Source of the DNA: Paragordius varius | Taxonomy: Eukaryota; Animalia; Nematomorpha | Reading direction: 5' to 3' | DNA: 64,000 nt | NCBI GenBank assembly: GCA_964247055.1 | Contig: OZ176050.1 | Coordinates: 10,850,001 to 10,914,000 of the forward strand | Shown: in pieces, positions 13,501-15,539 of the stretch | How positions within the stretch are numbered: the first letter of the stretch is position 1 | How the letters are laid out: each line of letters begins with the position of its first letter | Notes under the pieces: model-generated | Told to the model about the DNA's origin: nothing | The model's database searches: none | What the model saw: only the letters and a program-made list of their open reading frames with translations | Made by a program: the position numbers and the translations under genes

Positions 13501-15539
13501 ATCATTTTTTGAACAACTTTATAACTAAGATGATTTAAAGACAATGTATGTGAAATTGTTTTAAAACTCATTTACCTATTCCAAACTGTTACATATTCAA
13601 ATTTTAAATATATATTTTGTATGTATGCTATAGTTTATTGTGAGATTTGCATTGTTTTATTTTTATAATTTTGCATTATATATCCATTTGTTACTCAAAA
13701 TTTTTTTGTTACCATGCAAATTATGTGCACTTAAAAATAGTATATATAGAGTACAAAAAACGGAAAAAATATCTTATCTTTCAAGTTTTACGACTTATAC
13801 TTTTGTTACCTTTTACATCTGGTGGCCAATCGAATTCCGAACTAAGCTAGTGCTAGTGGAGGTTACTATTTGAACGAACATGTAAACCTTGCCATCGCTT
13901 TCATCGTTTCTACATTATTATGCCCGTTGTGCAAATAATTAACCACATTCGCCTGCAAGCTTTTTGGAATAATGATCGATCGTTCAAACTTAGCAATCCG
14001 TATTGGTAAGAAATTTTTCCTTTCCGTAAACCCAGCCAACTCAACATCACTCCAATCTTGATTATAAATAGCCTTGATTACTTTCTGCAAAATTTTATCC
14101 TTAACTGTCTCTCTCTGGATCTCATCTCGACTTAAATGAACGTTATAACAATTTAGGAACTTAAGATGTCTCGTTACCATGTAATCCCTATCAATTGTGT
14201 CAACATTATCTTCACCGGGACATCTTGACAAGTAATCGGCTCTTTTTTCCGGACCAGCCTGATAACTTAATTCAAAATCATAATCATTGAGTCGGTTAAC
14301 CCATCTTAACTTTCGCATTCTGAATTTCTTTCAAATTTCTATCCCTATTTATCAACCTAACCAGTGGTAAGTGGTCTGTCATCAAGAAAATGTAGTACCG
14401 CAGAATTGAACAACTCCACGATAGAAAGGGAAAAGGATATTGTTTTTGCATTAGAAAAGTTTCATAACTTCGTTTATGGTAGAAAGTTTGAAATTTTGAC
14501 AGACAACTTACCCCTGGTTAGGTTGATAAATAGGGATAGAAATTTGAAAGAAATTCAGAATGCGAAAGTTAAGATGGGTTAACCGACTCAATGATTATGA
14601 TTTTGAATTAAGTTATCAGGCTGGTCCGGAAAAAAGAGCCGATTACTTGTCAAGATGTCCCGATGAAGATGATGACACAATTGATAGGGATTACATGGTA
14701 ACGAGACATCTTAGGTTCCTAAATTGTCATAACGTTCATTTAAGTCGAGAAGAGATCCGGAGAGAGACAGTTAAGGATAAAATTTTGCAGAAGGTAATCA
14801 AGGCTATTTATAATAAAGATTGGAGGGATGCTGGCTGGGTTTACGCACCGGAAAAGAGAAATTACTTACCAATCAGGATTGCTAAGTTTGAACGATCAAA
14901 TCATTATTCCAGAACGCTTACAGGCGAATGTGGTTAATTATTTGCACAGAGGGCGTAATAATGTAGAAACGATGAAAGCGATGGCAAGGTTTACATGTTG
15001 GTTCAAATATTTGTAAGACCTCCACTAGCACTAGCTTAGTTCGGAATTCGATTGGCCACCAGATGTAAAAGGTAACAAAAGTATAAGTCGTAAAACTTGA
15101 AAGATAAGATATTTTTTCCGTTTTTTGTACTCTATATATACTATTTTTAAGTGCACATAATTTGCATGGTACCAATAAAATTTCGAGTAACAAATGGAGA
15201 TATAATACAAAAATATAAAAATAAGACAATGCAAATCCCACAAAAAACTATAGCATACATACAAAATTATATTTAAAATTTGCATGTGTAACACAAACTA
15301 AAACTAATTTTAGCAATCAAATAATTTTGCTTAAATTTCTGAATCCTATTTTCCTTTATTATGAAGGTGTACCCATTATTCATTTAATATCCTCGCCGTT
15401 CCCAAAAAATTGGCATCAGTTTTCTGACGATGGCACAAACATCGACGCAAAAACGGTTGAAGAAATAACCAAAATTTTGATTATTTTCGTTACGGAATAT
15501 TTAAACTTAGATATCACGAAATATACTTTAAATTGTTAA
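10525..15539 (+). CDS. QPCTL: Glutaminyl-peptide cyclotransferase, membrane-anchored (QPCTL/isoQC-like)
   Basis: N-terminal hydrophobic anchor [19 protein letters not shown]. Exons encode TCHFDSKY (~11530), [13 protein letters not shown] (~11810), VLLDLIGEP (~12805), DDHIPF (~13385) and [17 protein letters not shown] (15367-). The start could instead be 10504. QPCT versus QPCTL is inferred from the anchor. Confidence 0.88.
13587..15293. mobile_element. Palindromic Ty3/Gypsy-derived insertion with TG...CA ends and a 5-bp TSD, in the last QPCTL intron (13411-15366)
   Basis: Arms 13587-14381 and 14497-15293 are inverted copies. The 115-bp spacer and the arms encode Gypsy RNase H ([30 protein letters not shown]...[16 protein letters not shown]...ADYLSR) and the start of the integrase Zn finger ([15 protein letters not shown]). 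CAAAC flanks both ends (13582-13586, 15294-15298). Confidence 0.9.

Follow-up and report, generated by a model that had tools for sequence, protein, structure and literature searches.

A window of 64,000 nucleotides from Paragordius varius (Nematomorpha; GenBank assembly GCA_964247055.1, contig OZ176050.1, positions 10,850,001 to 10,914,000, forward strand) was analysed with respect to a long palindrome that lies in an intron (+ strand) of a Peptidase_M28 (glutaminyl-cyclase-like) gene and is composed of parts of a long terminal repeat (LTR) retrotransposon. Positions below are counted from the first letter of this whole stretch unless another locus is named. The inverted repeat was delimited by a repeat search (colinear inverted blocks) to 13587-15293 (1707 bp), with arms at 13587-14381 and 14497-15293, a spacer of 115 bp between them (14382-14496), and 93% identity between the arms (742 of 801 columns in a global alignment). 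It begins with TGTTACA and finishes with TGTAACA, and a direct CAAAC adjoins both ends (13582-13586 and 15294-15298). Past this 5-mer the flanks bear no mirror relation, and the palindrome termini are thus the exact limits of the symmetry; a random match of 5 out of 5 flanking positions was estimated at ~0.002, taking ~70% A+T into account. A preliminary description made from the letters alone had already given arms of ~795 bp, the 115-bp spacer, TGT...ACA ends, and CAAAC on both flanks, which the repeat search and the alignment bore out.

The arms hold coding sequence for RNase H and the start of the integrase, as had been recognised (Pfam RT_RNaseH on 14364-14582), and this pol sequence is contiguous with pol in ~40 copies of one retrotransposon family. 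Going inwards from the outside, each arm consists of a complete LTR, the primer binding site (PBS) and 5′ untranslated region (UTR) up to the gag start codon, and then antisense pol. The outer non-coding part of about 296 bp (231-bp LTR plus 65 bp PBS/5′ UTR) is slightly longer than the ~280 bp first proposed. The suggestion that it contains the LTR was right, as a true gypsy-order LTR is included, but the segment put forward (15012-15293) was wrong, the LTR occupying 13587-13817 and 15064-15293. Nor is the arm a pol fragment running outward into its own LTR, as had been supposed: 5′ LTR, PBS, and 5′ UTR are fused to pol in the opposite orientation, so that LTR and adjoining pol point in opposite directions, whereas in intact copies both have the same orientation. 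The spacer and the right arm together form one contiguous sense pol stretch (about 2394-3011 of the reference copy), and U3 termini form both outer ends of the palindrome. The features, including the two internal junctions J1 and J2, the target site duplication (TSD), and a motif resembling a polypurine tract (PPT), are as follows.

13582-13586, no strand: left TSD copy, CAAAC, read from the sequence; 5-bp TSDs occur family-wide
13587-13817, + strand: LTR of 231 bp in sense orientation, TGTTACA (U3 terminus)...ACA, as shown by alignment with the LTRs from both ends of intact copies
13818-13882, + strand: 5′ UTR from the LTR end to the gag ATG (13880-13882); its last 6 nt, AACATG (13877-13882), are the J1 microhomology
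13820-13837, + strand: PBS-like 18-mer starting with TGG, 2 nt past the LTR; many copies have it behind their 5′ LTR
13883-14381, − strand: antisense pol that covers the stretch between the zinc-finger start of the integrase and RNase H (about 3005 down to 2509 in the reference copy, C2:10050120-10054383, 4264 bp)
14382-14496, + strand: spacer of 115 bp; RNase H part of pol in sense orientation, continuing without a break into the right arm; J2, between 14381 and 14382, is blunt
14478-14496, + strand: GGTAGAAAGTTTGA plus AATTT, a motif resembling a PPT and placed immediately before the fold-back point; the PPT of the family, used for comparison, is GGTGAAGTGA directly followed by TG
14497-14999, + strand: sense pol that mirrors 13877-14381 and includes the J1 microhomology as CATGTT (14994-14999)
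15000-15063, − strand: inverted 5′ UTR and PBS, with the PBS complement at 15044-15061
15064-15293, − strand: inverted LTR of 230 bp with the U3 terminus outward (…TGTAACA), from the LTR alignment
15294-15298, no strand: right TSD copy, CAAAC, read from the sequence

Source family and its rearranged copies

The 110-Mb assembly was searched for relatives, the copies were compared directly, and overlapping loci of 3.3 kb were merged into near-full copies. The inner ~500 bp of the arm had ~40 genome matches at 83-89% identity, and its outer ~300 bp matched at a separate set of places. Merging yielded several near-full copies of a family of ~4.26 kb, the clearest being the reference copy C2:10050120-10054383, whose two direct LTRs (TGTTACA...ACA) measure 234 and 230 bp and share 91% identity; a parent gypsy element with direct LTRs, for which the preliminary description had proposed a search, thus exists in this genome. 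In family copies the direct LTRs of 231-234 bp stand about 4.0 kb apart, a TGG-initiated PBS (TGGTGGCC...) begins 2 nt past the 5′ LTR, and the 3′ LTR is preceded by a purine tract of the GGTGAAGTGA type. Colinear open reading frames (ORFs) of the copies L015, L012, and L029 carry, according to Pfam, gag-asp_proteas, RVT_1, RT_RNaseH/RT_RNaseH_2, and rve, and because protease, RVT_1, RNase H, and rve stand in this order, the source family is assigned by domain order to Ty3/gypsy. With regard to Bel/Pao, which was judged by domains and not by phylogeny, Peptidase_A17 was not seen among the Pfam matches of the family ORFs.

TSDs of 5 bp were found at nine other insertions (ACTTG, GTGTG, TACGG, GTGAT, AAAGC, CCACA, CCCTT, CATAT, and GCCTC), which comprise full copies, deletion derivatives of 1.1-1.25 kb, and solo LTRs. 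As the family has TG...CA ends and 5-bp TSDs, the ends of the palindrome and its CAAAC pair fit the integrase of this family. The palindrome shares the TG...CA ends, the PBS, and the short TSD of fixed length with gypsy-order elements and departs from them in the orientation of its LTRs, which are inverted.

Several further observations were made on the family. Short, non-autonomous derivatives of ~1.1-1.25 kb (L037/L038 at C1:8425267-8426732, L041/L046 at C4:6786329-6787591, and L057; further pairs at C2:4425503/4426593, C2:4443458/4444548, and C4:5404118/5405205) have two direct LTRs, small gag and RT remnants, and 5-bp TSDs (GTGAT, AAAGC), and several of them appear to be recently duplicated. 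The same family copy occurs three times at ~48-kb spacing (C5:11241669, 11290037, and 11337974, with 3′ LTRs about 3.9 kb downstream of each), and the identical flanks (GTGTG) suggest a tandem segmental triplication that carried the element along. The C-terminal end of the integrase ORF has an asparagine-rich low-complexity stretch with AAT/GAT-type repeats of 9-18 nt, whose length differs between copies (L034:242-397, L054:2520-2657).

Further inverted-LTR units were sought with a 19-nt LTR pattern, and two candidates for a second palindrome were rejected. The first (C2:14188478-14189570, L061) is an ordinary nest in which a solo LTR (TSD GCCTC) sits inside an antisense short element. The second (C4:9114620-9117034, L062 and L034) is a patchwork whose ends are truncated and for which a TSD could not be defined; a truncated LTR joins pol 3023 directly, and after it come a 3′ LTR cut at 154, pieces of RT and gag in antisense, and a 5′ LTR in inverted orientation. 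The junction of LTR and pol 3023 is about 12 nt from the pol breakpoint of the palindrome (~3011). A third copy (L054:175-2988, C5:5995785-5998601) runs through gag to reference position 1260, then into an inverted 3′ LTR with PPT, and then into sense integrase and a 3′ LTR; judged from this order it may be either another inverted rearrangement or a nest. Two family LTRs at C6:2514908(-) and 2515269(+) stand head-to-head with U3 starts about 60 bp apart, and could represent a double insertion or another inverted structure. A region 2.4 Mb upstream of the palindrome (L063) was compared as well and bears no similarity to the family.

Junctions, shared breakpoint, and arm history

At J1, the 5′ UTR up to the gag ATG is joined head-on to antisense pol through the 6-nt microhomology AACATG/CATGTT. 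An alignment of 28 pol copies and the leaders of intact copies showed that this hexamer is common to pol and to the reverse complement of the leader. J1 is present in both arms at the same nucleotides (AACATG at 13877-13882, CATGTT at 14994-14999), and a 121-nt probe spanning it was matched in the genome by this locus alone, all other matches ending at the hexamer. J2 is blunt, with an overlap of 0 nt either with the continuation of antisense pol or with the sequence preceding the sense pol. With an 80-nt probe across J2, 34 candidate places in the genome were scored, and every match except this locus split between probe positions 40 and 41. Complementarity between the start and the end of the spacer was searched for, and none was found. 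Since J1 and J2 are both unique in the genome, the palindrome is a single-copy event and not a member of the MITE-like (miniature inverted-repeat transposable element) non-autonomous family that had been envisaged; other palindromic copies with TSDs of their own, the search for which had been recommended, were not found in the assembly.

One other family copy breaks near the J2 fold-back point. L003 (C3:2148803-2150965; L003:360-2522) has normal ends, direct LTRs that are 95% alike, and the TSD TACGG, but internally its order is disturbed, with an inverted block placed after the 5′ LTR and 18 nt of PBS, and with a 6-nt filler and the sense 3′ end of pol with PPT and 3′ LTR coming next. The block starts at U3 position ~91 and extends backwards over the PPT and the 3′ end of pol as far as pol 2504; the inversion begins at the end of plus-strand strong-stop DNA, and the copy contains an internal inverted repeat of ~420 bp with a loop of 986 bp. 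The far end of the inverted block is 5 nt away from the fold-back point of the palindrome (pol 2504 versus 2509) in the same polarity, and among about 40 copies covering the site only the palindrome and L003 break at pol 2504-2509. The site comes after GGTAGAAAGTTTGA, which resembles the family PPT. Because of this resemblance and the breakpoint shared with L003, pol 2504-2509 is suspected to be an internal plus-strand start site of the family; central PPTs are known in Ty1, HIV, and EVADE (PMC7197481).

With regard to the history of the arms, 59 of 801 columns differ when indels are included, i.e., total divergence since formation is about 7%. At each of the substitution differences (38 of 38), one arm has the majority state of the relatives (left arm 22, right arm 16), which argues that the arms were once identical and diverged later. 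The differences are distributed in patches, with a longest identical run of 154 columns against a shuffle mean of 60 (P about 5e-5), a pattern that fits gene conversion between the arms with partial homogenisation.

Public Logan contigs, which are short and stem from three samples with two organism labels, were used to examine the integrity of the locus. The left flank-LTR junction is bridged in X3 record 12 and X4 record 20, and the right one in X1 record 8 and X4 record 21, each at flank-like depth. No Logan contig jumps from 13586 to 15294, i.e., an empty allele was not seen in them. The insertion is present in several samples.

Origin of the insertion

We favour, with a probability of roughly 0.6, a single old insertion of an aberrant gypsy-order complementary DNA (cDNA) that was formed by two inverted template switches and then joined to the chromosome by integrase at two identical U3 ends. 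An insertion as one unit by a Gypsy integrase, which had been proposed in the preliminary description, is upheld and is the most economical explanation of the locus, because both ends sit exactly at LTR termini and are flanked by a 5-bp TSD. The fold-back cDNA suggested there as precursor fits as well, though not in its simple forms (self-primed or tail-out dimer): a first inverted switch is needed, because the leader joins pol in the opposite orientation at the 6-nt microhomology.

In brief, the following sequence of steps would account for the structure. The plus strand (U3-R-U5-PBS-5′ UTR) would have parted from its template at the gag ATG; with AACATG at its 3′ end it would have annealed to CATGTT on a plus-sense strand that had been displaced, within the pol region where the integrase starts, and backwards copying of that strand would have fused LTR, PBS, and UTR to antisense pol (J1). 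Copying would then have reached a discrete 5′ end of the template near pol 2509, possibly that of an internally primed plus strand, where a blunt turn-around or end-joining may have given rise to a snap-back or an inverted dimer with a 115-nt asymmetric centre (J2). The resulting linear palindrome, necessarily TG...CA-ended, would have been integrated with the usual 5-bp staggered cut of the family, after which the arms would have diverged by about 7% while being partly homogenised by gene conversion. We infer the first two steps, and the third from its hallmarks, as well as the enzyme acting at each junction and the number of molecules involved (one or two). Precedents exist: inverted chimeras with complementarities of 2-21 nt arise where displaced 3′ ends prime on displaced 5′ strands (PMC1855051), virus-like particles contain central PPT flaps and inverted forms of cDNA (PMC7197481), and Ty1 integrase inserts unrelated fragments that merely end in TG...CA, with 5-bp TSDs (PMC2939329).

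A number of points weigh against this origin. It is drawn from a single locus, and no intermediate or second palindromic copy was found. As J2 has no microhomology, snap-back self-priming is not supported by base pairing, and the blunt junction makes host end-joining of two fragments equally possible, although J1 would then have to be present in two molecules. The conversion of a hairpin into a duplex with two free U3 ends is left unexplained by the evidence at hand. The coincidence of the L003 breakpoint has a chance probability estimated at ~1% and is suggestive only, and GGTAGAAAGTTTGA is only moderately purine-rich. Furthermore, the public contigs are too short to cross the centre of the palindrome.

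A first alternative is that one intasome co-inserted two cDNA fragments, both truncated so that only one side ended in U3 while the inner side was broken or capped by a hairpin, and that their inner ends were joined by non-homologous end joining (NHEJ). The 0-nt overlap at J2 is what end-joining would leave, the 115-bp asymmetry would arise naturally if the fragments broke at different places, and TG...CA ends are all that integrase needs (PMC2939329). However, the same rare and genome-unique J1 would be needed in both fragments, which calls either for a lost progenitor with J1 or for duplication of the molecule before joining, and we regard a joint insertion of two fragments as rather unlikely.

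A chromosomal rearrangement after normal insertion, the main rival, is likewise unlikely, with a still smaller probability than the two-fragment insertion. Here, an ordinary or internally rearranged copy would have inserted at CAAAC, and replication fold-back or microhomology switching would have replaced its right half with its inverted left half. Inverted duplications and microhomology junctions like J1 are typical of replication-based rearrangements, the ACA common to both LTR ends is a possible 3-nt landing site, and the patchy differences show DNA-level exchange between the arms after their formation. Yet the end of the inverted copy would have had to fall precisely on the first LTR base and be rejoined precisely to the right-hand TSD of the original insertion (estimated at ~1 in 1000), and to do so without duplicating any flank and without leaving a remnant of the 3′ LTR, the PPT, or the integrase core.

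A nested or double insertion of two independent, opposite copies later trimmed by deletions is very improbable. Inverted LTR pairs from nesting do exist in this genome (C2:14188478-14189570), and inverted tandems of LTR elements by double insertion have been reported in Drosophila (PMC5932611), but the unique J1 sits at identical nucleotides in both arms, the arms derive from one sequence, and there is neither an inner TSD nor a host element continuing past either LTR. Finally, palindromes are a known artefact of long reads (e.g., from chimeric fold-back reads) and no public contig spans the centre, but an assembly artefact is to all intents ruled out because the arms have diverged, indels included, where artefactual fold-backs would be near-identical, and because the flank junctions recur in contigs from independent runs of the three samples; the boundaries moreover coincide with LTR termini and TSD.

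Host gene context and comparison with known systems

The exons of the glutaminyl-cyclase-like gene lie at 10729-12951 and 15367-15539 (+ strand). The last coding exon (15367-15539, + strand) is supported by Pfam PF04389 on 15327-15539 and has a predicted acceptor AG at 15365-15366, i.e., as read from the letters, the predicted last acceptor is 73 bp downstream of the palindrome end. This end is close to the expected position of the branch point. The RNA of the palindrome is predicted to fold with 759 arm-to-arm pairs (-1236 kcal/mol), the longest uninterrupted helix being 155 bp. Among the sequencing runs recorded as RNA, none contained this stretch.

A more far-reaching interpretation, which we consider doubtful, is that the locus is an in vivo record of a gypsy-type integrase inserting two identical, inverted U3 ends in the manner of terminal inverted repeats (TIRs), that a hairpin transcribed from the intron may silence its own family, and that the breakpoint shared with L003 marks a new internal plus-strand priming site. 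If true, the U3/U3 insertion would be the first step expected on a route by which integrase-driven DNA transposons, Ginger among them, could descend from LTR retrotransposons. Work on aberrant products of reverse transcription has mostly used particles or cell culture, and such products are taken to be dead ends. With the cDNA origin favoured above, a palindromic cDNA that had undergone gross rearrangement and had U3 at both ends would nevertheless have integrated cleanly in the germ line and persisted there, which bears on the strictness of end pairing by integrase in vivo, on the birth of TIR transposons from LTR elements, and on the one-step birth of long hairpin-forming loci directed against retrotransposons. 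Taken together, the palindrome and L003 make a concrete and testable prediction of an internal plus-strand start in the family. As it is a single fossil, the general importance of the palindrome is moderate.

Among known systems, aberrant cDNA forms of retroviruses and LTR retrotransposons, such as the internal inversions that come from autointegration or from template switching, are near, since here too an element is joined to its own sequence inverted during replication and an LTR may adjoin an inverted internal part, as in reads of an Arabidopsis element with an LTR beside an inverted internal part (PMC7197481). Autointegration differs in that its products are circles in which an LTR terminus has been linked to an internal target, whereas the palindrome is linear, chromosomal, and flanked by a TSD; an autointegration product was rejected, J1 lying in the gag ATG region, 65 nt inward of the LTR, and not at an LTR (CA) end. 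The inverted chimeras arising by strand displacement in multiple displacement amplification have the geometry of J1, as a displaced 3′ end copies a strand of the same polarity backwards with an intervening deletion (PMC1855051), but there the enzyme is phi29 polymerase in vitro, while for the palindrome it would be the retrotransposon reverse transcriptase in the particle. DIRS elements are likewise retroelements with inverted terminal repeats; they use a tyrosine recombinase, have no TSD, and carry the inverted repeats as a family trait (PMC7192593, PMC3950715). Membership in DIRS was rejected, as the family has an rve DDE integrase and normally direct LTRs, and the palindrome has a 5-bp TSD.

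Ginger transposons, reportedly described by Bao, Kapitonov and Jurka in 2010, are said to have TIRs of the form TGT...ACA, a short TSD, and a gypsy-like integrase, and to be multi-copy cut-and-paste elements with their own transposase. The palindrome has the same kind of TIRs and TSD and is likewise linked to a gypsy-like integrase, but it is a single-copy, non-coding fossil without signs of excision or re-insertion. In the 5′ inversions of L1 by twin priming, which Ostertag and Kazazian are said to have described in 2001, the inverted part likewise arises during synthesis of the copy and the TSD is normal; L1, however, is a non-LTR element copied by target-primed reverse transcription at the chromosome, without LTRs or integrase. 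Hairpin-RNA loci that consist of inverted transposon copies, e.g., Mu killer of maize, arose by chromosomal rearrangement. They resemble the palindrome in being inverted partial duplicates of a transposon from which read-through would give a long hairpin RNA directed against the respective family, and differ from it in origin, the palindrome probably stemming from an integrated palindromic cDNA. MITE or foldback families were rejected on account of the J1 and J2 probes, which match only this locus in the assembly, and a nested insertion for want of an inner TSD or continuation and owing to the one junction common to both arms, with L061 as the contrasting true nest. In an incomplete search of the literature, no report was found of an integrated palindromic cDNA of an LTR retrotransposon with inverted LTRs and a TSD, nor of inverted LTRs outside DIRS. 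The palindrome sits within the known class of aberrant retroelement cDNAs, as a new form of it.

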